In this document: positions 42,056 through 64,000 of the stretch, piece by piece
How positions within the stretch are numbered: position 1 is the first letter of the stretch
Layout of the letters: each line of letters begins with the position of its first letter
Assembly (NCBI RefSeq): GCF_902713615.1
Contig: NC_052158.1
Coordinates: forward strand, 36,757,729 to 36,821,728
Source: Scyliorhinus canicula
Taxonomy: Eukaryota
DNA length: 64,000 bases
Direction: 5' to 3'
Position numbers and translations under genes: made by a program
Notes under the pieces: model-generated
What the model saw: only the letters and a program-made list of their open reading frames with translations
The model's database searches: none
What the model was told of the DNA's origin: nothing

Positions 42056-42138
42056 ATTGGACTTTTTTCAACTGTCTGTTTCCTCCTCCATAACATCACC
42101 CATCAGTCAGTTATTTATTTCACTACAGCTCTGTGAGA

Positions 42139-42943
42139 GACAGCCAGGACATTGAAAAGAGCGCGAGAGGTAAGACAGCCGGGACATTGAAAACAGCGCG
42201 GGAGGAGAGACAGCCAGGACATTGAAAAGAGCGCGAGAGGTAAGACAGCCGGGACATTGAAAACAGCGCGAGAGGAGAGACAGCCAGGACATTGAAAAGA
42301 GCGCGAGAGGAGAGACAGTCGGGACATTGAAAAGAGCGCGAGAGGTAAGACAGCCGGGACATTGAAAACAGCGTGGGAGGAGAGACAGCCAGGACATTGA
42401 AAAGAGCGCGAGAGGTAAGACAGCCGGGACATTGAAAACAGCGCGAGAGGAGAGACAGCCAGGACATTGAAAAGAGCGCGAGAGGAGAGACAGTCGGGAC
42501 ATTGAAAAGAGCGCGAGAGGTAAGACAGCCGGGACATTGAAAACAGCGCGGGAGGAGAGACAGCCAGGACATTGAAAAGAGCGCGAGAGGTAAGACAGCC
42601 AGGACATTGAAAAGAGCGCGAGAGGAGAGACAGTCGGGACATTGAAAAGAGCACGAGAGGTAAGACAGCCGGGACATTGAAAACAGCGCGGGAGGAGAGA
42701 CAGCCAGGACATTGAAAAGAGCGCGAGAGGTAAGACAGCCGGGACATTGAAAACAGCGCGAGAGGAGAGACAGCCAGGACATTGAAAAGAGCTCGAGAGG
42801 AGAGACAGTCGGGACATTGAAAAGAGCGCGAGAGGTAAGACAGCCGGGACATTGAAAACAGCGCGGGAGGAGAGACAGCCAGGACATTGAAAAGAGCGCG
42901 AGAGGTAAGACAGCCGGGACATTGAAAAGAGCGGGAGGGGACA
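42139..42943 (+). repeat. 35-bp minisatellite, 23 units, at the 5' end of a CR1
   Basis: Unit GACAGCC(A/G)GGACATTGAAAA(G/C)AGCGCG(A/G)GAGG(TAA/AGA). The first and last unit starts are 770 nt apart (22 periods). Confidence 0.97.
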
Positions 42944-44238: not shown

Positions 44239-47010
44239 GTGGTTTGGTGTGTCTATTTCAATGCCAGGAGTATACGAAATAAGGTAGGGGAACTGGCAGC
44301 ATGGGTTGGTACCTGGGACTTCGATGTTGTGGCCATTTCAGAGACATGGATAGAGCAGGGACAGGAATGGTTGTTGCAGGTTCCGGGGTTTAGGTGCTTT
44401 AGTAAAGTCAGAGAAGGGGGCAAAAGAGGGGGAGGTGTGGCGCTGCTAGTCAAGGACAGTATTACGGTGGCAGAAAGGGTGCAAGATGGGGACTCTTCTT
44501 CCGAGGTAGTACGGGCTGAGGTTAGAAACAGGAAAGGAGAGGTCACCCTGCTGGGAGTTTTCTATAGGCCACCTAATAGTTCTAGAGATGTAGAGGAAAG
44601 GATGGCGAAGATGATTCTGGAAAAGAGCGAAAGTAACAGGGTAGTTGTTATGGGAGACTTTAACTTTCCTAATATTGACTGGAAAAGATATAGTTCGAGT
44701 ACATTGGATGGGTCGTTCTTTGTACAATGTGTGCAGGAGGGTTTTCTGACACAATATGTTGACAGGCCAACAAGAGGTGAGGCCACTTTGGATTTGGTTT
44801 TGGGTAATGAACCAGGCCAGGTGTTAGATCTGGAGGTAAGTGAACACTTTGGAGACAGTGACCACAATTCGGTGACCTTTACATTAGTGATGGAAAGGGA
44901 TAAGTATACCCCGCAGGGCAAGAGTTATAGCTGGGGGAAGGGCAATTATGATGCCATTAGACATGACTTAGGATATGTAGGTTGTAGAAGTAGGCTGCAA
45001 GGGTTGGGCACACTGGATATGTGGAGCTTGTTCAAGGAACAGCTATTGCGTGTTCTTGATCAGTACGTACCAGTCAGACAGGGAGGAAAGGGTAGAGCGA
45101 GGGAACCGTGGTTTACCAAAGAAGTGGAATCTCTTGTTAAGAGGAAAAAGGAGGCCTATGTGAAGATGAGGCGTGAAGTTTCAGTTGGGGCGCTTGATAG
45201 TTACAGGGAAGCGAGGAAGGATCTAAAGAGAGAGCTAAGACGAGCAAGGAGGGGACATGAGAAGTCTTTGGCAGGTAGGATCAAGGAAAACCCAAAAGCT
45301 TTCTATAGGTATGTCAGGAACAAAAGAATGACTAGGGTAAGAGTAGGGCCAGTCAAGGACAGTGGTGGGAAGTTGTGTGTGGAGGCTGAGGAGATAAGCG
45401 AGATACTAAATGAATACTTTTTGTCAGTATTCACTCAGGAAAAAGATAATATTGTGGAGGAGAATGCTGAGACCCAGGCTATTAGAATAGATGGCATTGA
45501 GGTGAGTAGGGAAGAAGTGTTGGCAATTCTGGACAAGGTGAAAATAGATAAGTCCCCGGGGCCTGATGGGATTTATCCTAGGATTCTCTGGGAAGCCAGG
45601 GAAGAGATTGCTGAGCCTTTGGCTTTGATTTTTAGGTCATCATTGGCTACAGGAATAGTGCCAGAGGACTGGAGGATAGCAAATGTGGTCCCTTTGTTCA
45701 AGAAGGGGAGTAGAGATAACCCCGGTAACTATAGGCCGGTGAGCCTAACATCTGTGGTGGGTAAAGTCTTGGAGAGGATTATAAAAGATACGATTTATAA
45801 TCATCTAGATAGGAATAATATGATTAGGGATAGTCAGCATGGTTTTGTGAAGGGTAGGTCATGCCTCACAAACCTTATCGAGTTCTTTGAGAAGGTGACT
45901 GAACAGGTGGACAAGGGTAAAGCAGTTGATGTGGTGTATATGGATTTCAGTAAAGCGTTTGATAAGGTTCCCCACTGTCGGCTATTGCAGAAAATACGGA
46001 GGCTGGGGATTGAGGGTGATTTAGAGATGTGGATCAGAAATTGGCTAGTTGAAAGAAGACAGAGAGTAGTGGTTGATGGGAAATGTTCAGAATGGAGTTC
46101 AGTTACGAGTGGCGTACCACAAGGATCTGTTCTGGGGCCGTTGCTGTTTGTCATTTTTATAAATGACCTAGAGGAGGGAGCAGAAGGATGGGTAAGTAAA
46201 TTTGCAGACGACACTAAAGTCGGTGGAGTTGTAGACAGTGCGGAAGGATGTTGCAGGTTACAGAGGGACATAGATAAGCTGCAGAGCTGGGCTGAGAGGT
46301 GGCAAATGGAGTTTAATGTGGAGAAGTGTGAGGTGATTCACTTTGGAAAGAATAACAGGAATGCGGAATATTTGGCTAATGGTAAAATTCTTGGTAGTGT
46401 GGATGAGCAGAGGGATCTCGGTGTCCATGTACATAGATCCCTGAAAGTTGCCACCCAGGTTGATAGGGTTGTGAAGAAGGCCTATGATGTGATGGCCTTT
46501 ATTGGTAGAGGGATTGAGTTCCGGAGCCATGAGGTCATGTTGCAGTTGTACAAAACTCTAGTACGGCCGCATTTGGAGTATTGCGTACAGTTCTGGCCGC
46601 CCCATTATACGAAGGACGTAGAAGCTTTGGAACGGGTGCAGAGGAGATTTACCAGGATGTTGCCTGGTATGGAGGGAAAATCTTATGAGGAAAGGCTGAT
46701 GGACTTGAGGTTGTTTTCGTTAGAGAGAAGAAGGTTAAGAGGTGACCTAATAGAGGCATACAAAATGATCAGAGGGTTAGATAGGGTGGACAGCGAGAGC
46801 CTTCTCCCGCGGATGGAGGTGGCTATCACGAGGGGACATAGCCTTAAATTGAAGGGTAATAGATATAGGACAGAGGTCAGAGGTGGGTTTTTTACGCAAA
46901 GAGTGGTGAGGCCGTGGAATGCCCTACCTGCAACAGTAGTGAACTCGCCAACATTGAGGGCATTTAAAAGTTTATTGGATAAGCATATGGATGATAAGGG
47001 CATAGTGTAG
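44239..47010 (+). CDS. CR1 ORF2 (AP endonuclease + reverse transcriptase), 923 codons uninterrupted
   Basis: YFNARS, SETW, GDFN, SDHN; YMDFSKAFDKV, GVPQGSVLGP, FADD. The called start is GTG, so the true initiation site is uncertain. Confidence 0.93.
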   Translation: MVWCVYFNARSIRNKVGELAAWVGTWDFDVVAISETWIEQGQEWLLQVPGFRCFSKVREGGKRGGGVALLVKDSITVAERVQDGDSSSEVVRAEVRNRKGEVTLLGVFYRPPNSSRDVEERMAKMILEKSESNRVVVMGDFNFPNIDWKRYSSSTLDGSFFVQCVQEGFLTQYVDRPTRGEATLDLVLGNEPGQVLDLEVSEHFGDSDHNSVTFTLVMERDKYTPQGKSYSWGKGNYDAIRHDLGYVGCRSRLQGLGTLDMWSLFKEQLLRVLDQYVPVRQGGKGRAREPWFTKEVESLVKRKKEAYVKMRREVSVGALDSYREARKDLKRELRRARRGHEKSLAGRIKENPKAFYRYVRNKRMTRVRVGPVKDSGGKLCVEAEEISEILNEYFLSVFTQEKDNIVEENAETQAIRIDGIEVSREEVLAILDKVKIDKSPGPDGIYPRILWEAREEIAEPLALIFRSSLATGIVPEDWRIANVVPLFKKGSRDNPGNYRPVSLTSVVGKVLERIIKDTIYNHLDRNNMIRDSQHGFVKGRSCLTNLIEFFEKVTEQVDKGKAVDVVYMDFSKAFDKVPHCRLLQKIRRLGIEGDLEMWIRNWLVERRQRVVVDGKCSEWSSVTSGVPQGSVLGPLLFVIFINDLEEGAEGWVSKFADDTKVGGVVDSAEGCCRLQRDIDKLQSWAERWQMEFNVEKCEVIHFGKNNRNAEYLANGKILGSVDEQRDLGVHVHRSLKVATQVDRVVKKAYDVMAFIGRGIEFRSHEVMLQLYKTLVRPHLEYCVQFWPPHYTKDVEALERVQRRFTRMLPGMEGKSYEERLMDLRLFSLERRRLRGDLIEAYKMIRGLDRVDSESLLPRMEVAITRGHSLKLKGNRYRTEVRGGFFTQRVVRPWNALPATVVNSPTLRAFKSLLDKHMDDKGIV

Positions 47011-47204: not shown

Positions 47205-47640
47205 GTCTGGGCATCGTTGGTTAAGGTAGTATTTATTGGTCATCCCCAATTTCCCTTCTGGTGGTGGCGAGCTGCCTTCTTGAGCCACCGCAGTGCAGGT
47301 ACATCCACACCCACTGAGGGATGGAGTTGCAGGATCTTGACCAAGCGACAGTGAGAAATCGCAATAGATTTCCAAGTCAGGATGGTGTGTGGCTTCAAGG
47401 GGATCTTGGTGGTGGTCTCTGCATGGGTCTGCTGCCCTTCTCTGTCTAATTGGTAGCAATTCTTGGTTTCAAAAGGTGCTGTTGAAGGAGTCCTGGTAAA
47501 GCCCTGCAGTGCATCTTGTAGATGATACACACACTGCTTCCACTGTTCATTGTTGGTGGATGGATTGATGTTTTTGTGGAACGGGTGATAAAGAAGCGGG
47601 ATGTTTTCTCCTGACTAGTGTCAAGCTTTATTTGGTGTTG
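47205..47640 (-). mobile_element. degenerate L2-like 3' fragment
   Basis: Inverse of the family seen at 49450-49722 and 54476-54760. The clade call is inferred from resemblance. Confidence 0.5.
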
Positions 47641-47816
47641 GAGCTACACTCATCCAGGTAATTGGAAAGTATTGTATTCCAGTGAAATGGCAAACAGCCA
47701 CTGATGAAACTCTGTCAAATCCTTCTGGCACCCTGAGCCCAGATTTATTGCTGTTGAATAACCTAGTTTGGCATCAGTTCCAGAGCTGTTAAAACCCCAG
47801 TGAGTAACATCGTGTC

Positions 47817-47857
47817 TCATGCCGTGACTGACGAGCTCGATTCAATTCTTTCTTCAG
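47817..47857 (-). CDS. putative last coding exon of an MHC class I-like gene (S-EERIESSSSVTA-stop)
   Basis: Strong acceptor ATCTTTCTTTTCCACAG ending at 47858. The phase-1 frame gives EERIESSSSVTA*, with AATAAA candidates near 47744-47749 and 47627-47632. Confidence 0.65.
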
Positions 47858-47986
47858 CTGTGGAAAAGAAAGATTTTTGTGACAGACATTTTACAGCCTG
47901 CTAAATATTGAGACAAAGAAGAACAGGTACACAGGGATCTCTACACTCAGACACATGACCCACTCTGGTAGCATTGGAATACTTAC

Positions 47987-48016
47987 AATTTGCTGGGCTG
48001 TATCTAGATTTTTGTT
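47987..48016 (-). CDS. putative 30-nt cytoplasmic exon of an MHC class I-like gene (x-QKSRYSPAN)
   Basis: Long polypyrimidine tract plus AG at 48018-48017 and donor GTAAGT at 47986-47981. Phase 1-1, and it encodes the YxxA motif typical of class I tails. Confidence 0.65.
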
Positions 48017-48308
48017 CTCTTCCAAGAAGAGATAGAAAGAGAACATAAGGTGCAATCAAGTTCCCTTCCTCACCTCATTCCCAAAACTTCACTGGGGAAA
48101 TGACCAGCTATACCCACGCCATTTAAAGGGTATTATTTTACTCAACTGAGACAAAGCATCAGACAATATTCTCCCTTTCTTCCATCCTCTCACTGAATTT
48201 GAGTCCCCTGTCCCCTCGCTTTATGGGCCCCTGTCCAATACTGCTCAGTATGAGCCCCCGGTCCATTCACATCCCTTCCAGCCACAGGGGCGGCTTGGTA
48301 ACACAGTA

Positions 48309-48600
48309 GGGTGGCACGGTAGCACAGTGGTTAGAACTGTTGCTTCACAGCGCCAGTTTCTATTCCCGGCTTGGGTCATTCTTTGTGCTGAGTCTGCACG
48401 TTCTCCCCGTGTCTGTGTGGTTTCAGTCCAGCTTCCTGCCACCATCCTGCAAGACGTGCTTGTTAGGCGAATTTGACATTCTAAATTCTCCCTCAGTATA
48501 CCCAAACATGCGCCGCCATGGTGTGGCAACTAGGGGATTTTCACAGTAACTTCATTGCAGTGTTAATGTAAGCCTACTTGTGACACTAATAAAATATTAT
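48309..48600 (+). mobile_element. V-SINE, (ATT)n tail class
   Basis: Head, V-domain, tail CAGTAACTTCATTGCAGTGTTAATGTAAGCCTACTTGTGACAC. Confidence 0.85.
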
Positions 48601-49750
48601 TGTTACAATTCCCCCCACTCCCCATATAATCCCATCTGGCTCCTCTCTTCCTTTTTTAGACTCTGAATCCCAGTGCAACCCCCAGTCCCCTTATCCTCTG
48701 TGCTTTGCTGGCAGTTTCCCACAGGTCAAAAGGGATAATTGAAGTCCCCCATTTTCCCTGAAGCTCTCGTATTGTAGTGCAAACATTTATTCCTTACACT
48801 CCTTCTCACTACTGTATTTAGCGACCTGTAGTATTTCTGACGGACTTGAGCAGGCCCAATTTCCCAAGCTTCAATGCTGTCCTTTCCTTCATATGCCTGG
48901 GCCTCAACTCTGAATTTCCTCACTTCAGGTTTCCACCTCTGAAACTCATGTTCTTCAATGACGGTGCTCCTTAAATCCTAAACTGTTTGACCAAGCTTTT
49001 GCCCAACTGTCCTAGCATCGCCTTATGTAGCTTGTCATCACTTTTTGTTTTACAGTCTTGGATGTTTTATTCTGTTACATGCACTAATTAATGGTTTTAT
49101 AAAAGAATTAGCAGTGAAATGTCTCCCCTATTGTTCCCTAACTGTCCAATTAGATTATTTCTTTGAACGCTCCTCCATTACATAATCGCATTCCAATGCT
49201 TGAAAGTAACTTCAATGAATACTGTTAATCTTTGTTTCTTGTCCCAATGAACCTGCTAGCACCCATCACTATCCTTTCATGAGCCTATACTGAAACTGAT
49301 GTGGAATTAACACTCATGTATGAAACCAGAAATGAGGCATCATTCCAATACCTGCAGACGAGCAATAACCTGCATACAATTGGTTCCTTTACTGTATATA
49401 AACTCAAGTTGCTACTGACCATAAACTTAAGCAGAATGGCTGTATAAATCATGTGGCTACAAGGACAGGTCAAAGGCTGAAAATTCCATAGTGACTCACT
49501 CATTTCCTGACTCTCTAGAATATATGCACAATCTAGATTGGATAGGTGAGGACCATGATGGAGTATTCACCACTTGCCTGGATGAATGCAACTTCAACAC
49601 TCCAGACGCTCGACATCATCCAGGACAAAGTAGCCTGTGTGCCTGGCATCCATGTCGTCCACCATCTTAAACTTTTACTCTCTCCACCACAGACACAGTG
49701 GCAACAGTGTGTACCATCTACAAGAGCAGAGGGCAGCAGAGCAGAGCTTC

Positions 49751-50220
49751 TGATTGGCTGTTCTGGGGACATTTGCATACGTGCAGTGCGGTCAGCGTAA
49801 GTTGAAGGTGGTTTGTGAAGGGGCTGTTCTCGAGTGACAGCTTTACCCGAAACACTACTTACGTAGTGTCTCCCACCCATCCGCCTCCTCTAACCAAAAA
49901 AAAAAGTTCTGTCCGTTGGCCTAGTTTCAGCCGTTCAGAGGAGGAGGAGCAATCTGTGGGTGAGTATAAAAACTCACTTTAACCCAGGGATCGAGGCCTA
50001 GTTTCGGGAGCCGTTCAGAGGAGGAGGAGCAATCTCTGGGTGAGTATAAAAACTCACTTTAACCCGGGGATCGAGGCCTAGTTTCGGGAGCCGTTCAGAG
50101 GAGGAGGAGCAGTCTCTGGGTGAGTATACAGACCTAACGGTAACTTCCTGTTTTCCACTTTTTTTTTCAAAAGTGACGTCAGAGGGAAGCTTGATCTGAT
50201 TGGTTGGTAACCAATCTGCC
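49751..50220 (+). promoter_or_regulatory. candidate internal Pol II promoter of the CR1
   Basis: Inverted CCAAT (49753), octamer ATTTGCAT (49771-49778), ETS-like ACTTCCTG (~50143), CRE TGACGTCA (50174-50181) and further CCAAT boxes near 50200-50217. Motif matches only. Confidence 0.45.
49918..50130 (+). repeat. ~2.7 copies of an 80-bp repeat in the CR1 5' UTR
   Basis: GGCCTAGTTTC... starts at 49918, 49995 and 50075. Each copy has GGGTGAGTATA, and the first two continue AAAACTCAC. Confidence 0.92.
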
Positions 50221-50269
50221 CCAAATTTAAAACTCGTAAACTTAAATTAAACAAATTAATTAATTAGAG

Positions 50270-51225
50270 ATGGCTGGTCAGGTGATGTGCTTAAGCTGCT
50301 TGATGTGGGAGCTGGCAGATCCCATTGCGAGCTGCAGCGACCACATCTGCAGTAAGTGTTGGCTGCTCGAAGAACTCCGGCTCAGAGTTGATGAGCTGGA
50401 GTCTGAGCTTCACACACTGAGGCACATCCGGGAGGGGGAGGCTTACCTGGACACTTTGTTTCAGGAGGCAGTCACACCTGTCAGAGTAAATAGTTTAAAT
50501 CCTGCCAGTGGCCAGGGACAGCAGGGTGTGACTGCAAGTCAGGCAGGTAAAGGGAACCAGCAGTCAGGAACTCAGGAGCCTCAGCCCTTGACCCTGTCCA
50601 ACAGGTACGAGACACTTGCTCCCTGTGTGGATGGCGAATGGGCTGCAGGAAGGATGAGTCAGCTGACCAAGGCACCATGGTTCAGCAGGCCATTCAAGGG
50701 GAGGAAGTAAATAGGCAAGTTGTAGTTGTAGGGGATTCTATTATCAGAGGGATAGATAGTATCCTTTGTGAGCAGGATCGAGGGTCCCGCATGGTATGTT
50801 GCCTGCCCGGTGCTAGGGTGCGGGACATCTCTGACCGGCTTGAAAGGATATTGGAGAGGGAGGGGGAGGATCCAGTTGTTGTGGTCCATGTCGGTACCAA
50901 CAACTTAGGCAAGTCTAGGAAAGAGGACCTGTTTAGAGATTATAAAGAGTTAGGATTCAAATTAAAAAACAGGTCCTCAAGGGTCATAATCTCCGGATTA
51001 CTGCCCGAGCCACGTGCAAATTGGCATAGGGAGGCAAGAATAAGGGAAGTTAACACGTGGCTGAAAGAGTGGTGTGGGAAAGAGGGGTTCCTTTTCATGG
51101 GACACTGGCATCAGTTTTGGGACAGGGGGGACCTATACCGTTGGGATGGTCTCCACCTGAACCGAGCTGGGACCAGTGTTCTGGCGAAAAGAGTAAATAG
51201 GGTGGTCAATAGGACTTTAAACTAG
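50270..51225 (+). pseudogene. CR1 ORF1 (zinc-finger/leucine zipper + SGNH esterase), one frameshift
   Basis: CLSC...ICSKC...LRLRVDELESEL in one frame, then VVGDS, CLPGARV, HVGTNN and DGLHLN in the -1 frame from ~50638. Confidence 0.9.
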
Positions 51226-51359
51226 AGATTGGGGGGGAAGGGAAAGTCAGGGAACCAAGAGGTGAAGGGATCAGTGGGAAGCGTAGCTCCTTAGGATTAC
51301 AAAAAATCACGAAAAGACAGAGCTCAGGAGAGGTTACGATAGTCCCCATCTCACAAAAT

Positions 51360-54236
51360 ATGACACAGTGTATGGAAAGGCTCAGTAAACCAAGGTCCAT
51401 CACACTAAGAAAACAAAAAGGGACAGTCAATAGGGAATTAAAGGTGCTATATTTAAATGCCCGCAGTGTACGGAACAAGGTAGATGAGCTTGTGGCCCAG
51501 ATTGTGACTGGCAGGTATGATGTGGTAGGCATCACAGAGACGTGGTTGCAGGGGGTTCAGGACTGGCAGTTAAACATCCAGGGATTTACAACCTATCGAA
51601 AAGACAGAGAGGTGGGTAGAGGGGGCGGGGTTGCCTTGTTAATTAGAAATGATATTAAATCAATAGCACTAAACGACATAGGGTCAGACGATGTGGAGTC
51701 TGTGTGGGTAGAGTTGAGGAACCACAAAGGCAAAAAAACCATAATGGGAGTTATGTACAGGCCTCCTGACAGAGGTCAGGACCAGGGGCACAAAATGCAC
51801 CACGAAATAGAAAGGGCATGTCAGAAAGGCAAGGTCACAGTGATCATGGGGGACTTCAATATGCAGGTGGACTGGGTAAATAATGTTGCCAGTGGACCCA
51901 AAGAAAGGGAATTCATTGAATGTTTACAGGATGGCTTTTTGGAACAGCTTGTGATGGAGCCCACGAGGGAACAGGCTATTCTGGACTTAGTGTTATGTAA
52001 TGAGCCAGAATTGATAAAAGACCTTAAAGTAAGGGAACACTTAGGAAGCAGTGATCATAATATGGTAGAATTCAGTCTGCAATTTGAAAGAAAGAAGGTA
52101 GAATCAGATGTAAAGGTTTTACAGTTAAATAAAGGTAATTACAGGCGCATGAGGGAGGAACTGACAAAAATCGACTGGAAGCAGAGCCTAGTGGGAAAGA
52201 CAGTAGAACAGCAATGGCAGGAGTTTCTGGGAGTAATTGAGGACACAGTGCAGAAGTTCATCCCAAAGAAAAGAAAGGTTATCAGAGGGAGGATTAGGCA
52301 GCCATGGCTGACAAAGGAAGTCAGGGAATGCATCAAGGCAAAAGAGAGAGCCTATAATGTGGCAAAGAGTAGTGGGAATTCAGAAGATTGGGAAGGCTAC
52401 AAAAACAAACAGAGGATAACAAAGAGAGAAATAAGGAAGGAGAGGATCAAATATGAAGGTAGGCTAGCCAGTAACATTAGGAATGATAGTAAAAGTTTCT
52501 TTAAATACATTAAAAACAAACGGGAGGCAAAAGTAGACGTTGGGCCGCTCCAAAATGACGCTGGTAATCTAGTGATGGGAGACAAGGAAATAGCTGAGGA
52601 ACTTAATAAGTACTTTGCGTCAGTCTTCACAGTAGAAGACATGAGTAATATCCCAACAATTCAGGAAAGTCAGGGGGCAGAGTTGAATATGGTTGCCATC
52701 ACAAAGGAGAAGGTGCTAGAGAAACTAAAAGGTCTGAAAATTGATAAATCTCCGGGCCCAGATGGGCTACATCCTAGAGTTCTAAAGGAGATAGCTGAAG
52801 AAATAGTGGAGGCGTTAGTTATGATCTTTCAAAAGTCACTGGAATCAGGGAAAGTCCCAGAGGATTGGAAAATCGCTGTTGTAACCCCCCTGTTCAAGAA
52901 GGGAACAAGAAAAAAGATGGAAAATTATAGGCCAATTAGCCTAACCTCGGTTGTTGGCAAAATTCTAGAATCCATCGTTAAGGATGAGATTTCTAAATTC
53001 TTGGAAGTGCAGGGTCGGATTAGGACAAGTCAGCATGGATTTAGTAAGGGGAGGTCGTGCCTGACAAACCTGTTAGAGTTCTTTGAAGAGATAACAAATA
53101 GGTTAGACCAAGGAGAGCCAATGGATGTTATCTATCTTGACTTCCAAAAGGCCTTTGACAAGGTGCCTCACGGGAGACTGCTGAGTAAAATAAGGGCCCA
53201 TGGTATTCGAGGCAAGGTACTAACATGGATTGACGATTGGCTGTCAGACAGAAGGCAGAGAGTTGGGATAAAAGGTTCTTTTTCGGAATGGCAACCGGTG
53301 ACAAGTGGTGTCCCGCAGGGTTCAGTGTTGGGGCCACAGCTGTTCTCTTTATATATTAACGATCTAGATGACGGGACTGGGGGCATTCTGGCCAAGTTTG
53401 CCGATGATACAAAGATAGGTGGAGGGGCAGGTAGTATTGAGGAGGTGGGGAGGCTGCAGAAAGATTTAGACAGTTTAGGAGAATGGTCCAAGAAGTGGCT
53501 GATGAAATTCAACGTGGGCAAGTGCGAGGTCTTGCACTTTGGAAAAAAGAATAGAGGCATGGACTATTTTCTAAACGGTGACAAAATTCATAATGCTAAA
53601 GTGCAAAGGGACTTGGGAGTCCTAGTCCAGGATTCTCTAAAGGTAAACTTGCAGGTTGAGTCGGTAATTAAGAAAGCAAATGTAATGTTGTCATTTATCT
53701 CAAGAGGCTTGGAATATAAAAGCAGGGATGTACTTCTGAGGCTTTATAAAGCACTAGTTAGGCCCCATTTAGAATACTGTGAGCAATTTTGGGCCCCATA
53801 CCTCAGGAAGGACATACTGGCACTGGAGCGGGTCCAGCGGAGATTCACACGGATGATCCCAGGAATGGTAGGCCTAACATACGATGAACGTCTGAGGATC
53901 GTGGGATTATATTCATTGGAGTTTAGGAGGTTGAGGGGAGATCTAATAGAAACGTACAAGATAATGAATGGCTTGGATAGGATGGACGTAGGGAAGTTGT
54001 TTCCATTAGCAGGGGAGACTAGGACGCGGGGGCACAGCCTTAGAATAAAAGGGAGTCACTTTAGAACAGAGATGAGGAGAAATTTCTTCAGCCAGAGAGT
54101 GGTAGGTCTGTGGAATTCATTGCCACAGAGGGCGGTGGAGGCCGGGACATTGAGTGTCTTTAAGACAGAAATTGATAAATTCTTGATTTCTCGAGGAATT
54201 AAGGGCTATGGGGAGAGAGCGGGTAAATGGAGTTGA
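51360..54236 (+). CDS. CR1 ORF2 (AP endonuclease + reverse transcriptase), 958 aa, ATG start, intact
   Basis: YLNARS, ITETW, GDFN, SDHN; YLDFQKAFDKV, GVPQGSVLGP, FADD. No stops. Confidence 0.96.
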   Translation: MTQCMERLSKPRSITLRKQKGTVNRELKVLYLNARSVRNKVDELVAQIVTGRYDVVGITETWLQGVQDWQLNIQGFTTYRKDREVGRGGGVALLIRNDIKSIALNDIGSDDVESVWVELRNHKGKKTIMGVMYRPPDRGQDQGHKMHHEIERACQKGKVTVIMGDFNMQVDWVNNVASGPKEREFIECLQDGFLEQLVMEPTREQAILDLVLCNEPELIKDLKVREHLGSSDHNMVEFSLQFERKKVESDVKVLQLNKGNYRRMREELTKIDWKQSLVGKTVEQQWQEFLGVIEDTVQKFIPKKRKVIRGRIRQPWLTKEVRECIKAKERAYNVAKSSGNSEDWEGYKNKQRITKREIRKERIKYEGRLASNIRNDSKSFFKYIKNKREAKVDVGPLQNDAGNLVMGDKEIAEELNKYFASVFTVEDMSNIPTIQESQGAELNMVAITKEKVLEKLKGLKIDKSPGPDGLHPRVLKEIAEEIVEALVMIFQKSLESGKVPEDWKIAVVTPLFKKGTRKKMENYRPISLTSVVGKILESIVKDEISKFLEVQGRIRTSQHGFSKGRSCLTNLLEFFEEITNRLDQGEPMDVIYLDFQKAFDKVPHGRLLSKIRAHGIRGKVLTWIDDWLSDRRQRVGIKGSFSEWQPVTSGVPQGSVLGPQLFSLYINDLDDGTGGILAKFADDTKIGGGAGSIEEVGRLQKDLDSLGEWSKKWLMKFNVGKCEVLHFGKKNRGMDYFLNGDKIHNAKVQRDLGVLVQDSLKVNLQVESVIKKANVMLSFISRGLEYKSRDVLLRLYKALVRPHLEYCEQFWAPYLRKDILALERVQRRFTRMIPGMVGLTYDERLRIVGLYSLEFRRLRGDLIETYKIMNGLDRMDVGKLFPLAGETRTRGHSLRIKGSHFRTEMRRNFFSQRVVGLWNSLPQRAVEAGTLSVFKTEIDKFLISRGIKGYGERAGKWS

Positions 54237-55038
54237 AATCAACCATGATTGAATGGTGGAGTGGACTCGATGGGCCGAATGGCCTTACTTCCACTCCTAT
54301 GTCTTATGGTCTTATGGTCTTATGTATTTAATTCACCAGGGCTGGGATTCTCCATTCCGCATTTGCCCTGCCACCACTTCCAGCAAGAAGGAAGAATTTG
54401 GTGCTCAGCCAAAACTCATTCATTGCAGTGGGACCATAAATTCCTTCAGCATGAATCAATGGAGAATTCTGGCCCAAGGGTTCTTCATAAGCAGCTTCCA
54501 AATTCACAAATTCCCATCACGTCCAAAATTAAACAGAGCAGACGCATGACAACAACAGCAGCTGCAGGTTATTCTCCAATTCAAACCGCATTCAGACTGG
54601 AAAATATATCACTGCCCCTTCAATGCCACTGGATCAAAAACTTGGGAATCCATTCCTCTTGGGACTGTGAGTGGGCTTGTAGTGGTTCGTGAAGGTGACC
54701 TTCTACTGGTCGCTCAAGGGATATAGAGATGGGCAACAGATGCTGGCCTTTCCAGCAATACATATCTCAAAGAATAATGACAAAATGGAGCATGTTTCAG
54801 TATGGGGACATTTTGGAAATAGTGATTACATTAATATCAGCTTTTTATTGACATAATGAATGTGGAGAGGATGTTTCCCCTTGTCGGAAAATCTTGAACT
54901 TAGGATCACTTTTCAAAATGTCGAACTCGGGGTCGTCCGTTCATTTAAGACAGAGTTGAGGAGAAATGTCTTTTCTCAGAGGGTCGTGACAGGTTACCAG
55001 GAGTAGACTGGAATGTGTAGTTGAGGTTGCAATCAGAT

Positions 55039-55330
55039 CATTTGGCCCATCGAGTCTGCACCGACCCACTTAAGCCCTCACTTCCACCCTATCCCCGTAA
55101 CCCAATAACCCCCCTCTAACCTTTTTGGTCACAAAGGGCAATTTAGCATCGCCAATCCACCTAACCTGCATGTCTCTGGATTGTGGGAGGAAACCGGAGC
55201 ACCCGGAGGAAACCCACGCAGACATGGGGAGAACATGCAGGCTCCACACAGACAGTGACCCAGCGGGGAATCGAACCTGGGACCATGGCGCTGTGAAGCC
55301 ACAGTGCTATCCACTTGTGCTACCGTGATG
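55039..55330 (-). mobile_element. V-SINE
   Basis: Head, V-domain and a CR1-like tail. Confidence 0.85.
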
Positions 55331-57750
55331 CCCTTCACCAAAACAATGGCAGGTGTGGAACTCTGCCACTCAAACCAACACATTCTATCTTGATTCCTTT
55401 TAAACCTGAGACTTCTAAATTTGTTGCCTGCAAAGGGTATTAAGGAACATGGAGTTGAGGGAGAGATCACCCGTAATCTAATTGAAAGACACACGAGCAG
55501 TTGAATGACCTACACCATTTCAGATTGTCTCAAATATCTCCACTCTTTTGGCTGTCCTTGTACTGTGCTCTGGATGTGGCTGAATCAAGGCTATTCACAA
55601 TGTAGAAAATACTCTGATCTACCAAGCTGTTCCAAAATGGATGGTATCACATATCTATGCATTGAAAACTTTCAGGAATAATAACATTCTCTCAATGCCT
55701 CAAAGTTTTTAAAAAAAATTTCATGCTTCCGTCTACGCCACTTACAATGCCACCAATATTTGTGTGCTGAGGACCTGTGCCTTGTTATTTAAGCTACTGT
55801 AATAAATGTGAGCAGCTGAAGCCCCATCACAGAGCCTTGTGAGAAACCATTGACACGTTTATTCCTACTCTGTTCTTTACTGCCTTACCAGTCTCCTAAT
55901 CAGATCAATAAATATTCATTCAATTCCGTTAGCACAGGACTCTTCTGCTGAACTTTATGGAAGTTCATATAAACTACATTCATGGATTTTCTCCTGTCTA
56001 CTGATTCCTCAAACAATTCGATTGGGTATACCAGATCTCTGCTTTGCAAATCCAAGCTGTGATTCTCCAATCAGCTCAAATTTAGTCAAGTACTCTTTCT
56101 CTCTTCTTTCTTAAATGATGGAGCTACGCAAGTAATTTTCCAAACTACCCATACAATTCCCAAATTGGATCAACTTTGGAAGTTAATGGCTAAAACATCT
56201 GCAATTTGCTCACCTACATCCTTTAAAATCCTAATAAAGGTTCAGCATTACTTCTCAGTTTTGTACTCTGCGCTTCTATTTATGAAGGCCAAGATCTGTA
56301 ATGACCCAACTAATTTTCAATAACTTCTGACAGTTTATCTGTAAGTTTTCCCGATAACAATTTTGACCAGTTTTCTGTTTTCTGTCTCATCCCGTTAAAA
56401 GTTAGTGAAAATCGCTTATTGTCACAAGTAGGCTTCAAATGACGTTACTGTGAAAAGCCTCTGGTCGCCACATTCCGGCGCCTGTTTGGGGAGGCTGGTA
56501 CGGGGAGTCATACCAAAACCTAGAATATTAGTAAATAGCATCTTTCTCCTTTTTGAAACCAACATTGAATGTGATCATATTATGATCACTGTTTGATAAA
56601 CGTTCCTTTTTTGTTATGTTAACTGTATCTGGTTCATTACTCAATCCTAAATGGAGTACACCATGACCTAGTGTTGGCTCGCCAACATTTTGGAAGAAAA
56701 TTAGATTGAATGAAGAGGTTCAATATTTTTCTAACCTCAGTTACTGTGTTTCTCCTCATCTATGTTAAAAAGAAACCTTTTGTTTGCGACAAGCCTCTCT
56801 CTTGTTAAATAAATTTAGAGTACCCAATTCAGGGGCAATTTAGCGTGGCCAATCGACCTAGCCTGCACATCTTTGGGTTGTGGGGGTGAAACCTATGCAA
56901 ACACGGGGAGAATGAGCAAATACCACATGGACAGTGACCCAGAGCCGGGATCAAGACTGGGATCTCCGGGCCGCAAAGCAGCAGGGCTAACCACTGCACC
57001 CCCACACTGCCCCCTTGCTGCAAGCCTTTCTAATCTCTTACCTAATATTTTGTGTGTCACTTCAAAACTGTTTGCAGGCAGCCTGGCGACAACTCCCAGT
57101 ATATTCATATGTCCTTTTACATTTCACAATTCAAACTGAAATCACAATATTTTGCTTTCCCTTATCTAGATTATTTCTCTAATATTAGAATAATCCAAGT
57201 AAAATTAATTGTCTCTCAGTAAAGGCTGGGTTAGAAAATTGACAGCCAGCCTGGAATTGTAAAAGCAAATCGTGTCTGACAGGCTTGTTGAGAATAGAAC
57301 AATTGATATTTTGTATATCAATTTTCAAAAAGATCTGATAAAAGTGAAAGCTGTGGTAATAAGGGTCCAGTGTCAGTGTGTATACAACATTGACTACGAG
57401 ACAGAAAACATGTTTCTCAGGCTGGAGGCAAGTACAGAATGGTATTTCCCAGGGTTTGGTATTAGGACCACATCTCATATTGTAGATTATATTGATAACC
57501 TGGACCTGGGTATTCAAAAGATTAATTTCAAACTTTTCAGGTGGTAGAAATACAGTAAAAAAAGAAAGGATTGCAGCAGACTTCAGCGGGGGCACACAGA
57601 CTAGTGAAATAGGCAGGCAGGTAGCCAACGAGGTTTAATGCAGCCAAGTGCAGAGATGTCCAATTTTAAAAGACAGAATGAGGAGAGGTGATTACAAACA
57701 TCTTTAAAACCTCACTGACAGACACAGCCCGCAGTCGCTATTCTTCTTAC

Positions 57751-58023
57751 CCCAATCTCTGGCCTCCACTCCTTTGCTGCGCTGCTTATACCGACAGGAA
57801 TAGGTGGCGCTGTCCGCCAACTCTATCTGCACCCATCTTCTGAGCTGGTAGGTGCCATTGTGGTTGGGCAAGGTGCCCGTGGAATATGCGTCTGTAATCG
57901 GCTCACCATTTTTCAGGAGGATTACTTCAATATCGCAAGGGTAAAATCCAGTGACGAGACAGGGGAGTTGGGTCGGTTTAGTGGCTGATGCCTTGTCCAC
58001 AGAAATAAACATCTGAGGAGCGA
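57751..58023 (-). CDS. MHC class I-like alpha3 (Ig C1-set) exon
   Basis: Acceptor TGTTTTACTCTCAG (AG at 58025-58024) and donor GTAAG (57750-57746); 273 nt, phase 1-1. Encodes (V)APQMFISV...LPCLVTGFYPCDIEVILLKNG...TLPNHNGTYQLRRWV...TYSC...DW with 54 residues between the canonical Cys. Confidence 0.9.
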
Positions 58024-58244
58024 CTGAGAGTAAAACAGATTATAGTTTGTGTGAATAGTGTGAGGGCTTTAAACTGGATTTGGATACCTGATATCAGAAA
58101 CACAAATTCACAGAAATATTACAGCGCAGATGGAGGCCAGCCATTTTGCCAATTGTGCCGCACCAGCTCTCCAAACAAGCAACGTGGCAATGCCTTTCCC
58201 CTGCATTTTCCCCAGACCCATGCATATTGCTTCCATTCAAATCA

Positions 58245-60848
58245 AGAAGGGCCAAGTGGCAATGCACGCTTATGTGAAGAAGGCGAGCAGGATGCTTGCC
58301 CAACATCTTAGGAAACAGGAGGCAGCAAGGAAAATTTGCAGAGTGAAGGACAGGTAAGGTGGGGGTGAATGGTGAGTTGGAGGAGTTTTATAGGAGATTA
58401 TATGAGTCAGAGCCCCCGGCTGGGGAGAGGGAGGGAATGTGGTGGTTCATGGATGAGTTGAAATTTCCCAGGGTGGGCGAGGAACTGGTGCAGGGATTGT
58501 GGGCTCCCCTTGGGTTGAGGGAGTTAATGGATTTTAAATGTGGATGCTGGTGCTAGGTTGTTGGCGAAGGTGTTAGCTTCGTGAATTGAGGACTGTGTCC
58601 CGTGGATGATATGTGAGGACCAAAAGGAGTTTGTGAAGGTGAGGCAGTTGTTGTCGAATGTGAGGAGATTGCTTAACGTGATTATGATGCCCCGGAGGTG
58701 TTGGGAGGGTTTGCGTTGGGCAAGGGTTTGTGAACTTGGTTCGGTTGTTGCAAAAGGAACCGGATGAGTTTGGAATATTTCGGTTTGCACCATAGGACAA
58801 GGCAGGGGTGCCTGCTCTCACTGCTGCTTTTTGCCTTGGCGATAGAGCCATTGGCAATGGCGCTTGGAGTGTTGGGGGATGGAGAGGGATGTGCCAGGTT
58901 TGGGAGGTGGGCGCGGTCAAACACACCTTTTCGCTGTATGCGGATGGCCTGCTGCTATATATTTACGGCTGATTGGGGGGCATTGGCAGTATTATGGAGA
59001 TTTTGGAGGGCTCTGGTCAGTTTTCCAGAAATAAGCTGAATACGGGAAAGAACGAGGAGTTCCCGATTGAGACCAGAAGGCAGGAGAGGAGGTTGGGGGA
59101 GCCCCCGTTCAAGATGGTGCAGTCGAGTTTCCGGTATCTAAGCATTCAGGTGACGCGGGGTTGGGCATAGCTGCATCAGTTAAATTTAACTCGGTTGGTG
59201 GAGCAGATAAAGGAGGATTTTTAGAGGTGGGATGTGCTGCCATTGTCGTTAGTGGAGTGGGTGCAGACAATGAAGATGACGGTGCTGCCAAGGTTCTTGT
59301 TTATATTTCAGAACCACAGGATCGTCTTTCTGAAGTCATTTTTTGAAAAGGTTACTGCATTGTTCTCGGGGTTTGTGTGCGCATCAAGAGGGTTTTATTG
59401 GAGTAGTGGTGAGGAGGAGGAGGAGGAGAGTTGTCGTTGCCAAATATAATAGATTACTACTGGGCGGCTAACATCGATAGTGAGGAAGGGAGGGGTCGGA
59501 ATGGAGGCTACTTCTTGCAGGATAACGAGTTTAGGGGCACTGTCGAGAGCGCCTCTGCCGTTGTCGCCGGCCAAGTACTCCGTGAGCCCAGGGGTTGTGT
59601 CGGCCGAGAGGGTAGGGGGGCAGTGGAGGCAGTACTTGAGACTGGAGGGTGCCTCAGTATGAGCACCGATCTGTGACTACTAGGGGGGCTGGATGCGAGG
59701 TTTCAGGGGTGATTGAGCAGCTTGGAGATCTGTTCATAAGGGACACCTTAGCAAGATTAGAGGACCTAAAAGTGGAATATGAGCTGCCCCGGGGAAATGG
59801 TTTCAGGTACTTACAAGTGGGGGCGGAGGGAGGTGCCTTCCTTTCGCATGTTGCCGCTCTTGGGGCTGCAAGAAAAGGTGTTGGTAGGGGAGGAGAAGGT
59901 GTCCGAGGTTTATAAGGAGCTGATAGATTGGAGGGGGCCCGGTTGGGGGAAATTAAGCGGAAGTGGGAGGAGGAGCTGGGGAAGAGGTTGGGGGGAGGTG
60001 ATGGCTGGGACGTGGGAGGAGGCTCTGCAGAGGGTGAATACGTCCTTGTTGTGTGTAAGGCGCAACCTTATTCAATTTAAAGTCGCCCACAGGGTGCATA
60101 TGACGTTGGCGAGGATGAATAGGTTCTTTGAGGGGGTGGAGGGCAGCATGGTAGCATTGTGAATAGCACAATCGCTTCACAGCTCCAGGGTCCCAGGTCC
60201 GATTCCGGCTTGGGTCACTGTCTGTGTGGAGTCTGCACATCCTCCCCGTGTGTGCGTGGGTTTCCTCCGGGTGCTCTGGTTTCCTCCCACAGTCCAAAGA
60301 TGTGCAGGTTAGGTGGATTGGCCATGATAAATTGCCCTTAGTGTCCAAAATTGCCCTTAGTGTTGGGTGGGGTTACTGGGTTATGGGGTTATGGGGATAG
60401 GATGAATTGTTGACCTTGGGTAGGGTGCTCTTTCCAAGACCTGGTGCAGACTCGATGGGCTGAATGCCCTCCTTCTGTACTGTAAATTCTATGATTGGTC
60501 TGGGTGGTGTGCGGGGAGGTCAGCAAACCACATCCACATGTTTTTGGTGTGCCCAAAACTGAAGCGTTTCTGGCAGCAGTTTGCAGACATAATGTCTGAG
60601 GTAATGGGGGTGAAGGTGGTGGCCTCGAGCCCAGAGATAGTCATATTTGGGGTGTCGGAAAACCAGGAGACCAGGGGAAGTGAGAGGCCGATGTCTTGAC
60701 CTTTGCCTCCCTGATAGCCCGGAGATAGATTTTGCTTGGATGGAGGGACTCGGAGATTCCGAATCCGAATGTGGAAAATATCAAGCTCGTCTTGAGAGGG
60801 TGGGTTGATGAGTCCGCCCGGAGGTGGATGGTGTTCATCAACGTCTTC
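58245..60848 (+). mobile_element. 3' half of a degenerate L1 ORF2 (contains a SINE at 60141-60493)
   Basis: From KASRMLAQHLRKQE through RTRQGC.LS.LLFALAIEPL to IKLVLRG...RRW. Confidence 0.85.
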
Positions 60849-63200
60849 TTTCTGCAACTTCCCTACCGCCTTTCCCATGGACACCAGCCAAAACTCCCTC
60901 TCCTTCAACATTCCTGCCTACATGGCCTCTGAATACCTCCTGTTCACCCTCACAATCTCTTCCACCAATCTTGCCATCTTGTCCCGTTCCACCTTTCCCC
61001 TGTGTCCCGGAATCAAAATAACCACCCCCCAACCACCGCCTCGAGTGCCTCCCACAGCGTGGCGCCTGTGACATCCCCCGTATCATTAAGTTCCACATAG
61101 CTCCGGATGGCCCACTTGCACACCAGATCTGGAATCTTCCCCAGTAACCACCTCATGAACTCCACACTATCCCAGTTTGGGGCATAAACATTTCCCAAAA
61201 TGCTGGCATACCCTCCAGTTTCACACTGACCATCATGAACCTTCCCCCCTGAATCTGCCGCAATGTTCCCCACATCGAATGCCACCTGCTCATTCACCAG
61301 CACCGCCATGCCCGTCGTATTCGTGTCCAGACCCGAACGAAACACCTGCCCTACCCATCCTTTCCTCAGACTTGTTTGATCCCCGATCTTTAAATACACG
61401 TCTTGTAAAAAAGCCAGGTCCATCTTTTCATTCATAGAATTTATAGAATTTACAGTGCAGAAGGAGGCCATTCGGCCCATCGAGTCTGCACCGGCTCTTG
61501 GAAAGAGCACCCTACCCAAGGTCCACACCTCCACCCTATCCCCAAAACCCAGTAACCCCACCCAAAACTAAGGGCAATTTTGGACACTAAGGGCAATTTA
61601 GCATGGCCAATCCACCTAACCTGCACATCTTTGGACTGTGGGAGGAAACCGGAGCACCCGGAGGAAACCCACAGACACTGTCTGTCCAGACTCCACACAG
61701 ACAGTAACCCAAGCCGGGAATCAAACCTGGGACGCTGGAGCTGTGAAGCAAATGTGCTAGCCACAATGCTACCGTGCTGCCCCACAATGCTACCGTGCTG
61801 CCCCTATCAGAGTCCTCAGGTACGCGAACACACGTGATCGTTTGACATGCCCATTAGCCCCCTCACAATGTGACCAGCCTGGTTGGGGGGCTCCCCGCCC
61901 CCTCTCCTGCTGATCAATCATTTCCTTTTTGGGCACGCCCCAACCCCATCACATGGCCCTCCAGGCCCATCCTTGGATGTTCACCGTCATAGCTCCCTTT
62001 TGAACCACGACAACTCCTTTGACAGCACCCCCTTTCCACCCAACAAACCAACAGCCTCTCCCTGACACCAACCACCTGACCAACCCCCACTGCGTTCCCT
62101 TTAACTCACCTGCCCAGCTAGCATGGCAGCCCGGGCCTAAGGCCTCCAAACTACCATCAGCCCCAAATTCCCCTTCCTTCCCTCCCCCATCCCCACTCCC
62201 TCCATAAACAAAGAAACAGAAAAAAAGTGCACACACCTTTGATGCTCCCCAAGCACCCTGCCACCAATTCCGACAACACATTTCGAAGGGGAAAATGAGA
62301 AAAATTTCTCCATCAACGACCAAGGGGAAACCCCTCCAAAGTTCAATGTCCGCCTCCTCCTGCCAGTCCATTGTCTCTCAAAAACTCCATAGCCTCCAAA
62401 ATAGCATTCCCAATTCTGGAATGCCACCCAGAGGTGGATCGGGCATAGCACTACAAACTTCACCACCTTCTTGAAGAGGGCAACCTTGTTCCGGTTAAAC
62501 CCAGCCCATCTCTTTGCCAGTTTTGTGCCCAGGTCCTGATCCCACAGTTCCCTTCCAGGTGCATGTCCCAGGTGCACGTCCTTGTCTGTCTTGCCCACTG
62601 CAGAATTTACTCCTTGTCCAAGTAGTGGTGCAGCTGCACCACCATCGCCCTCAGTGGCTCGTGCCTGTGGCCTCCTCATAGCATCCTGTGCCCTTGGGCG
62701 ACATCCAGGGACCGGCTCACGGCCCCTTCTCCCCATCAGCTTTTCCAACATCTTCGGGCACATACTTGACAGCCTCTACTTCATCAATGCCTTCGAGCGT
62801 TGGCACGATCCGCAAGTTGTGTCTTCTGGAGTGCTTCTCCAGATTCTGCAGTTTCTCCTTCAGCCTCTTTTGGGTCTGCAGAATCACTCCCATCAGCCAC
62901 CAATGAGGCCAATGTGCTCCCCACCATCTCCTCCACCTTCTGGATTACCTGGCCCTGGGACTCCAGCCTCTGTTCCACATGCCAATACCCACTTTAAGAG
63001 ACTCTACCACCTTGGCTGGGTCTTCCTGGGCTTCTTTTCAGCTGGCTGGTTTAATTTAACAAAACCACCAACTGCTCCACTGATCACTGGGTGGGCAGGA
63101 CAGGCCTTTTACTGTCTGACATCTTGACCGGTGGCGCAGAAAGATTCTGCTCCACCAGGTCCCTTAATCTCGACCCACTCCTGCACCATGGATCCATCCA
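60849..63200 (-). mobile_element. 5' half of a degenerate L1 (ORF1 + EN; contains a SINE at 61433-61801)
   Basis: ORF1 remnants (LAKRWAGFNR...VKFVVLCP), EN (FLQDVYL...KGWVGQVF, NVYAPNWD), ending at MGKAVGKLQK. Confidence 0.85.
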
Positions 63201-63289
63201 CCAGCCACACCAGAGGAGTCACTATTTCACCTGGCACGCCTACACTTTTTCCATCCAAACGTCCACCCTATGAAGGGGAAAAGGACCAA

Positions 63290-64000
63290 AAGCAGTTCCT
63301 CATCTCCTATCTACCCTCATAACTGAATGTTCTCATCCCTGGAACAATTCTTGTAAACCCCTCCTGCACTTATTACAATCCGGTCACATCCTTCCTATAG
63401 TGTGGCACCTAGAACTGTACGCAATATTCCACCTGAGGCCTAACTGGTTCTTGTGTAAGCTGCGTATAGCCTCCTTGCTCTTGAACTCTATGCCACTATT
63501 AATAAAGCCAGAATACTATCTGCTCGATTAACTGCTCTCCCACCTGTCCTGCCACCTTCACTGATCTATGCACAAATACACCCAGGTCCTTCTGCTCCTG
63601 CACCCTTGTAAGAATTTTACTGTTTTTCTCGATTATTTCTCCCTGTTCTTCCTACGAAAATGCATCGCCTTACACTTCTCCCCATTGAGCTTCATCTGCC
63701 ATCTAACTGCACACTCCACCAACTGCTGAAGTTCTCCACTGTCCTCTTCACAGTTATAATTCCAAATTTTGTGTCATCCACAAACTTGAAAATTGTCTAC
63801 ATCATGAATATATAATCAGGAAAAGCAAGGTTTGCAAACCACAACCCCGAGGAACACCACTGCAAATCCTCCAGCACAAAAAATAGCCATTGGCCATAAT
63901 TTTCTGCTTTTCATTATTCAGCCAATTTTGTACCAATGTTGCAACTGTCCCTTTTACACCATGAGCTACAATTTTTCTCGCAAGTCTGTTGTGTGGCACT
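63290..64000 (-). mobile_element. degenerate CR1 RT fragment
   Basis: Minus-strand peptides RLARKIVAHGVKG...VQNWL...SGVPRG and a CR1-like downstream region. Confidence 0.8.

Follow-up and report, generated by a model that had tools for sequence, protein, structure and literature searches.

An Unannotated and Most Likely Decaying Copy of a Shark MHC Class I Lineage, without Its Membrane-Anchor Exon, in the Catshark Scyliorhinus canicula

Introduction

[quoted passage not shown] A preliminary description, drawn from the sequence alone, took the three for the hidden 3' half of one atypical class I-like gene. The question raised by this locus is what gene these exons come from and whether that gene still works; its true oddity, not noticed in that description, is the absence of the membrane-anchor exon expected between alpha3 and the tail. 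Our answer, held with about even confidence, is a recently disabled and weakly transcribed copy of an old, unannotated paralogue that has lost its anchor exon. The three exons would be the alpha3 and the two tail exons of a second, unannotated S. canicula copy of a shark-specific class I lineage, which has annotated members in S. canicula (XP_038672469-74), S. torazame (XP_072331241), Stegostoma (XP_048375966), and Chiloscyllium (XP_043534426).

Results

The Alpha3 Exon and Its Class I Affiliation

The alpha3 exon occupies positions 57751-58023 of the minus strand (273 nt) and is bounded by an AG acceptor, with ttttactctcag immediately 5' of the exon, and by the donor GTAAGA immediately 3' of it. 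Its first two bases close a split codon and its last base starts another, so that it is a phase 1-1 exon, the usual arrangement for immunoglobulin (Ig) domains. The frame is open throughout (90/90 full codons), and the translation contains the strings PCLVTGFYP, LPNHNGTYQ, and YSC, the cysteine pair C21 and C76, and the core tryptophan W63. Moreover, the exon borders fall at the same residues as in the homologues (V/APQ at the start and DW/ at the end; slashes mark exon boundaries throughout). The Pfam C1-set model matches the domain with E=1.3e-12 and 48 bits (cut-off 21), and 671 matches were found among 1.84 billion representative proteins, the top single-domain ones reaching 70% identity and E=2e-33, a similarity that we judge to lie far beyond chance. 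Coordinates, splice borders, open frame, and Pfam match all agree with the preliminary description of a C1-set exon of this size and phase with class I strings.

Several lines of comparison support the assignment of the encoded domain to class I alpha3, and not to class II, beta2-microglobulin (beta2-m), or Ig and T-cell receptor (TCR) chains. Among sequence matches in the PDB, the alpha3 domains of MR1, CD1, and class I chains, among them 6LUP (nurse-shark class I) and 9CH4 (shark UGA), score 49-61 bits, versus at most 38 bits for beta2-m alone and 39 bits for an Ig heavy chain; no class II chain is present among the top 60 of these matches. The AlphaFold model is a seven-stranded C1-set sandwich (predicted local distance difference test score, pLDDT, 84.8), and its best Foldseek matches are again 6LUP and 9CH4 (root-mean-square deviation 1.8 A, 38% identity), a fold that by itself cannot separate alpha3 from beta2-m. 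Sequence identity is highest to Stegostoma XP_048375966 (P0277, 72%), followed by Heterodontus P0004/P0003 (69%), S. torazame XP_072331241 (P0153) and Chiloscyllium XP_043534426 (P0274) (both 68%), Heptranchias, Squalus AAN77874, and Pristiophorus (67-68%), and the annotated S. canicula gene XP_038672469 (P0269, 66%). Overall, it amounts to 65-72% within a shark-only class I clade and to at most 53% for classical UAA-type alpha3 domains.

The phylogeny was reconstructed from a 57-row maximum-likelihood alpha3 tree and from an 18-row tree, with 91 columns in the topology test. The window alpha3 is nested within the shark-only clade with support of 100/96 and 100/100 in the two trees, respectively; members of this clade include genes of Stegostoma, Chiloscyllium, Heterodontus (P0004/P0160), Scyliorhinus, and Squalus. 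Its sister group is the orectolobiform pair Stegostoma and Chiloscyllium (85/91 and 95/91). A topology in which the window copy is constrained to group with the annotated genes of catsharks is worse by 8.3 log-likelihood units (approximately unbiased test, p-AU 0.039), which on 91 columns is a marginal rejection. The NGT sequon (NHNGT) and the strings APQMF and EVILLKNG are common to the window, Stegostoma, and Chiloscyllium, and an extra cysteine (FYPCDI, where the others have FYPRDI) is private to the window copy. At sites invariant in 11 relatives, the window alpha3 has two private changes (I50T and Q77R), and the relatives have 0-2 of their own. Thus, the class I affiliation proposed earlier is borne out by identity, PDB ranking, and the alpha3 tree; the epithet "atypical" has to be dropped, since the domain fits normally into a shark-only clade that is already known and shows no excess of odd substitutions.

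The Cytoplasmic-Tail Exons

Tail exon 1 lies at 47987-48016 of the minus strand, about 9.7 kb downstream of alpha3, on the same strand and in class I order. This 30-nt, phase 1-1 exon encodes xQKSRYSPAN with a YxxA motif; it is preceded by a long polypyrimidine tract and an AG acceptor and is followed by a perfect donor (T/GTAAGT). The acceptor is a tandem AAGAG (48017-48020), and the AG located 2 nt upstream would shift the frame if used. A hydrophobic in-frame peptide ahead of this exon, LIAPYVLFLSLLG, was rejected as merely the translated polypyrimidine tract. After 129 nt the terminal exon begins at 47857, behind the acceptor ttcttttccacag; its coding part (47817-47857, minus strand) encodes SEERIESSSSVTA and ends in the TGA stop codon at 47817-47819. 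Joined in phase 1, the two exons read xQKSRYSPAN/SEERIESSSSVTA followed by the stop, exactly the peptide that the preliminary description wrote for two mini-exons with strong splice sites and an in-frame join.

The relationship of this tail to known class I tails was assessed over the whole window. A profile built from the tail exons of eight homologues was run against all 2883 stop-to-stop fragments of both strands, and tail exon 1 ranks 1/2883 (E=0.018; runner-up 0.96). The last 13 residues of tail exon 2 rank 2/2753 among stop-preceded window peptides for similarity to homologue C-termini. On these two ranks a chance origin was rejected; as the exons also agree in strand and phase, follow the expected order and spacing, and have suitable splice sites, we consider the tail to be real. 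The relatives end in WKKRG/GEKKSGYSPAN/PAERGESSSNSSARA (Heptranchias), VERKSAYRPAN/CGESSSNSSSQA (annotated S. canicula gene), and GKKKSIYNLAN/STDSGESPTISFSLA (Chiloscyllium); the window tail, QKSRYSPAN/SEERIESSSSVTA, retains the KS.Y.PAN and ESSS of the lineage tails. This resemblance supports the identification of both exons as class I cytoplasmic exons of the same lineage as alpha3. The earlier characterization of the peptide as a class I-type tail, with YxxA followed by a serine-rich sequence, is upheld by the YSPA of the first tail exon, the ESSSS of the second, and the homology to the lineage. YXXA is a conserved class I tail motif that acts in endocytic trafficking (PMC6769792).

The Missing Anchor Exon and the Alpha3-Tail Interval

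In every relative, a connecting-peptide/transmembrane (TM) exon of about 43 codons stands between alpha3 and the tail, and the membrane span of the lineage is highly conserved (GIVxAxxxLIxxxIGxxVWKRxG). The interval expected to hold this exon in the window (48017-57750, minus strand, 9.7 kb) consists mostly of transposable elements, and no TM exon was detected there or elsewhere in the window. Neither tblastn with seven class I proteins (E up to 50) nor two scans of the open frames for hydrophobicity revealed one. When every open phase 1-1 exon with AG..GT borders and a length of 60-180 nt was listed for 48017-57750, the only candidates derived from long or short interspersed nuclear elements (LINEs and SINEs). 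A profile made from nine TM exons of the lineage was compared with the full window in both orientations and gave a best match of E=0.2 on the opposite strand, inside a LINE. Individual candidates were rejected as antisense LINE sequence (52411-52560 and 51355-51507), as a SINE-like repeat (56858-57025), or, in the case of 54488-54568, as a segment within a repeat that has Arg and Asp and runs into a stop. Because the connecting-peptide/TM exon is absent, the three exons as read here cannot encode a normal membrane class I chain.

The interval contains an antisense insertion of a full-length LINE (about 49908-54325, plus strand, ends approximate), with a GDSL-esterase open reading frame (ORF) 1, an ORF2 of 958 amino acids without stops that combines EEP and reverse transcriptase (RT) domains, and, at the 5' end of the element, 80-nt units arranged in tandem (49918-50128); clear target-site duplications around this element were not seen. 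A second LINE (44239-47010, plus strand), located just downstream of the gene, has an intact EEP and RT ORF2 of 923 amino acids. As the ORF2s of both LINEs are intact, these elements look young and are possibly active. The distance from alpha3 to the stop codon is 10.2 kb, versus 8.4 kb for the whole S. torazame relative.

The Search for Alpha1/Alpha2 Exons and Protein Models

No alpha1 or alpha2 exon was found on either strand of the 64-kb window by tblastn with class I proteins, and a profile of 137 alpha1alpha2 sequences (PF00129 superdomain) gave a best window match of E=11. The region upstream of alpha3 (58024-64000, minus strand, about 6 kb) contains transposon-derived ORFs and no alpha1/alpha2 exon; any such exons, if they exist, lie more than 6 kb upstream of alpha3, past the 64-kb limit beyond which the preliminary description placed them together with the leader. 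Word-index searches for products of 50-157, 135-429, and 210-670 amino acids found no database protein with the window alpha3, and none of the matches of 50-670 amino acids was flagged as encoded by the window. Thus, the exon set appears to be absent from public protein models.

Transcription and the 3' End

Coverage by sequencing runs was examined over 47300-50000. The sole unique coverage in run X1 (75 Mb of contigs), which is RNA by guess only, is one 220-nt contig at 47643-47858 with a depth of about 4. It comprises the terminal exon from its acceptor plus 174 nt of 3' untranslated region (UTR), and the depth is zero over the flanking intron and tail exon 1. We read this contig as the spliced terminal exon because a chance end within one base of the predicted acceptor is unlikely; transcription and splicing of the last exon are thus apparent. 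Base 47858, a G, is part of the match too; the final base of alpha3 is G and that of tail exon 1 is T. This base is a weak hint that the transcript may join alpha3, or another exon ending in G, straight to the last exon. The DNA-like run X3 has coverage in every bin, and one of its contigs (851 nt) passes colinearly through exon and intron. None of the 15 million reads sampled from the raw RNA run X5 falls on the unique parts of 47573-48300.

The 3' UTR, to the extent covered by the X1 contig, spans 47643-47816 of the minus strand, with AATAAA at 47744-47749 and 47627-47632. Beyond it, a high-copy repeat begins at about 47590 and continues downwards. Run X12 has locus-specific contigs over 47300-47641, with two single-nucleotide polymorphisms common with X3, and none where the last exon is coding. 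The X12 signal may come from an unrelated transcript or from a longer 3' UTR, captured by a 3'-biased library, that ends close to the AATAAA at 47231-47236.

These data bear on the earlier proposal that the three exons form one gene. It stands as far as strand, order, phases, and lineage are concerned; the connection between them was not recovered, no read or contig within the coverage of 47300-50000 linking alpha3 with the tail.

Other Features of the Window

Positions 1-6400 contain at least three head-to-tail copies of a unit of about 2.13 kb, the first two copies being 95-100% alike and the third 65-71%. At 42135-42941, just upstream of the LINE ORF2 at 44239-47010, there is a 35-nt minisatellite with 23 copies and 87% matches, which generates three overlapping long minus-strand ORFs.

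Discussion

The history that we favour for this locus is that of a decaying paralogue. The copy is old, to judge from its alpha3, which groups with the genes of orectolobiform sharks instead of the annotated catshark gene; an old copy whose alpha3 is kept as well as that of working relatives would therefore have been long under selection.

The loss of the anchor exon is probably recent, because the trafficking tail, purposeless without a membrane span, is still well preserved. The copy would thus have been held under selection for most of its history and then have lost its anchor exon, the interval between alpha3 and the tail being filled by LINEs that are presumably young. What is left would be a pseudogene or a 3' gene remnant, a single unit of three exons that is weakly transcribed, still spliced at its last exon, and probably non-functional. 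A disabled copy is also the likeliest state of the locus in view of its swelling by transposons, its very low RNA signal, and the lack of a protein model.

Several observations weigh against this interpretation. All three exons are intact, with good splice sites and no stop or frameshift, and their phases let alpha3 join either tail exon 1 or tail exon 2 in frame to the conserved stop. The alpha3 domain has no more private changes (two) than its functional relatives (0-2), and its terminal branch (0.19) is no longer than theirs. An isoform without TM exon is annotated in the closest relative (Chiloscyllium XP_043534431), so that an anchorless product can be natural. Moreover, the identity of X1 as RNA is a guess, the lack of a protein model is weak evidence, and the analysis covers sequence up to window position 64000, any 5' half lying outside it.

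The main rival explanation, which we consider unlikely, is a functional gene whose class I-like chain has no anchor, is secreted constitutively, and carries the old tail as a C-terminal peptide. Its product would arise by joining alpha3 to tail exon 1 (RDW-E-QKSRYSPAN-SEERIESSSSVTA and stop) or to exon 2 (RDW-A-EERIESSSSVTA and stop); both joins are in frame across intact exons and splice sites, alpha3 is without excess decay, and the Chiloscyllium isoform XP_043534431 (P0278) splices alpha3 directly to the homologous tail exon. The terminal exon is apparently transcribed and spliced, and the G that X1 matches at 47858 suits alpha3 as the upstream exon better, if weakly so. Soluble class I genes are also known elsewhere, e.g., salmon Sasa-ULA (PMC2846915). 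However, the YXXA trafficking motif (PMC6769792) would be useless in a secreted protein and is conserved nevertheless, which argues for a recent loss of the anchor rather than an old adaptation; in addition, the X1 depth is only about 4, the 15 million raw X5 reads contribute zero, there is no protein model, and any 5' half would lie outside the window. The more specific scenario, in which an ancient catshark paralogue became a dedicated secreted class I-like molecule by fixing the alternative splice form of the bamboo sharks, is less likely again.

Two further explanations are less likely. The locus could hold an ordinary membrane-bound class I gene with a TM exon that is lost only in the assembly or haplotype, by collapse or deletion at the LINEs, or is too diverged to be recognized. 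Good preservation of the cytoplasmic tail implies that an anchor was functioning until recently, and the interval is rich in repeats, where assemblies and haplotypes tend to differ. We nevertheless regard this as improbable: the window is without N, X3 is colinear with 47300-50000 except for repeats, the tblastn, hydrophobicity, enumeration, and profile searches all ended without a hydrophobic phase-compatible exon, and the lineage TM exons are so conserved that detection would be expected. Least probable among the alternatives is that alpha3 and the tail exons are independent, scattered class I fragments that form no single transcription unit and have no 5' half nearby. The lack of a linking read and of alpha1/alpha2 in the 6 kb upstream would fit such fragments; their common strand, correct order, compatible phases, and common closest lineage would not, and a single gene with one internal deletion is simpler.

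If the locus is a decaying copy, as we favour, it matters mainly for annotation, as one more unannotated class I locus of the catshark. It would also mean that two copies of a conserved lineage once existed in the carcharhiniform line, which helps to reconstruct how class Ib genes of sharks have evolved by birth and death. Should the anchorless reading hold, the locus would be a rare cartilaginous-fish gene committed to a soluble class I product. Neither outcome alters knowledge of how class I molecules work.

Comparison with Known Class I Systems

The published nonclassical lineages of sharks comprise UBA and UEA, which are multicopy, and UDA, UFA, and UGA, which are single copy, all of them linked to the MHC (PMC10751288, PMC12562908). 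Assignment of the window copy to UEA was rejected because its relatives keep the alpha2 cysteines, and assignment to UGA was rejected at 38% identity to 9CH4. The annotated catshark genes S. canicula XP_038672469-74 ("H-2 Q9 alpha chain-like / MR1-like") and their orthologue S. torazame XP_072331241 share the alpha3 clade and the exon phases with the window copy, and their tail (KSAYRPAN, then ESSSNSS) has the same design. These genes possess leader, alpha1, alpha2, and TM exons, and the S. torazame gene is compact (8.4 kb), whereas the window copy has no TM exon and extends across more than 16 kb, nor is its alpha3 the closest to theirs (p-AU 0.039 against such a grouping). The closest alpha3 domains are those of Stegostoma (P0277, 72%) and Chiloscyllium plagiosum (P0274, 68%), sister to the window copy in both trees. 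The Chiloscyllium and Stegostoma genes have a TM exon and an extra cytoplasmic exon, and their anchorless form is a splice variant; in the window, by contrast, the TM exon itself is absent. In the C. plagiosum model XP_043534431 (P0278), alpha3 is joined to the YNLAN tail exon with the TM and the extra cytoplasmic exon skipped, and the product is predicted to be soluble; the window locus would have to make the same direct join.

The alpha1alpha2 regions of galeomorph members of the clade (P0151, P0274, P0277, and P0269, from Heterodontus, Chiloscyllium, Stegostoma, and Scyliorhinus) are 80-84% identical, which is unusually high for class I. In squalomorph genes that share this type of alpha3, the alpha1alpha2 is ordinary and UAA-like, and this mismatch suggests domain shuffling between class I lineages. 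The Heterodontus francisci model P0003 ("CD1d2-like") matches LINE reverse transcriptase, a sequence also matched in the LINEs of the window, over its first ~70 residues and continues with alpha3 and TM; this gene model is probably chimeric and based on another 3' fragment of a class I gene.

Pseudogenes and gene fragments also exist among the human HLA class I loci. In salmon, both a soluble class I gene, Sasa-ULA, and a pseudolocus, Sasa-UCA, are described (PMC2846915). Class I families often leave truncated copies and sometimes fix secreted members without an anchor; the window locus belongs to a known kind of gene, is most likely decaying, and is probably not a new kind of immune gene.

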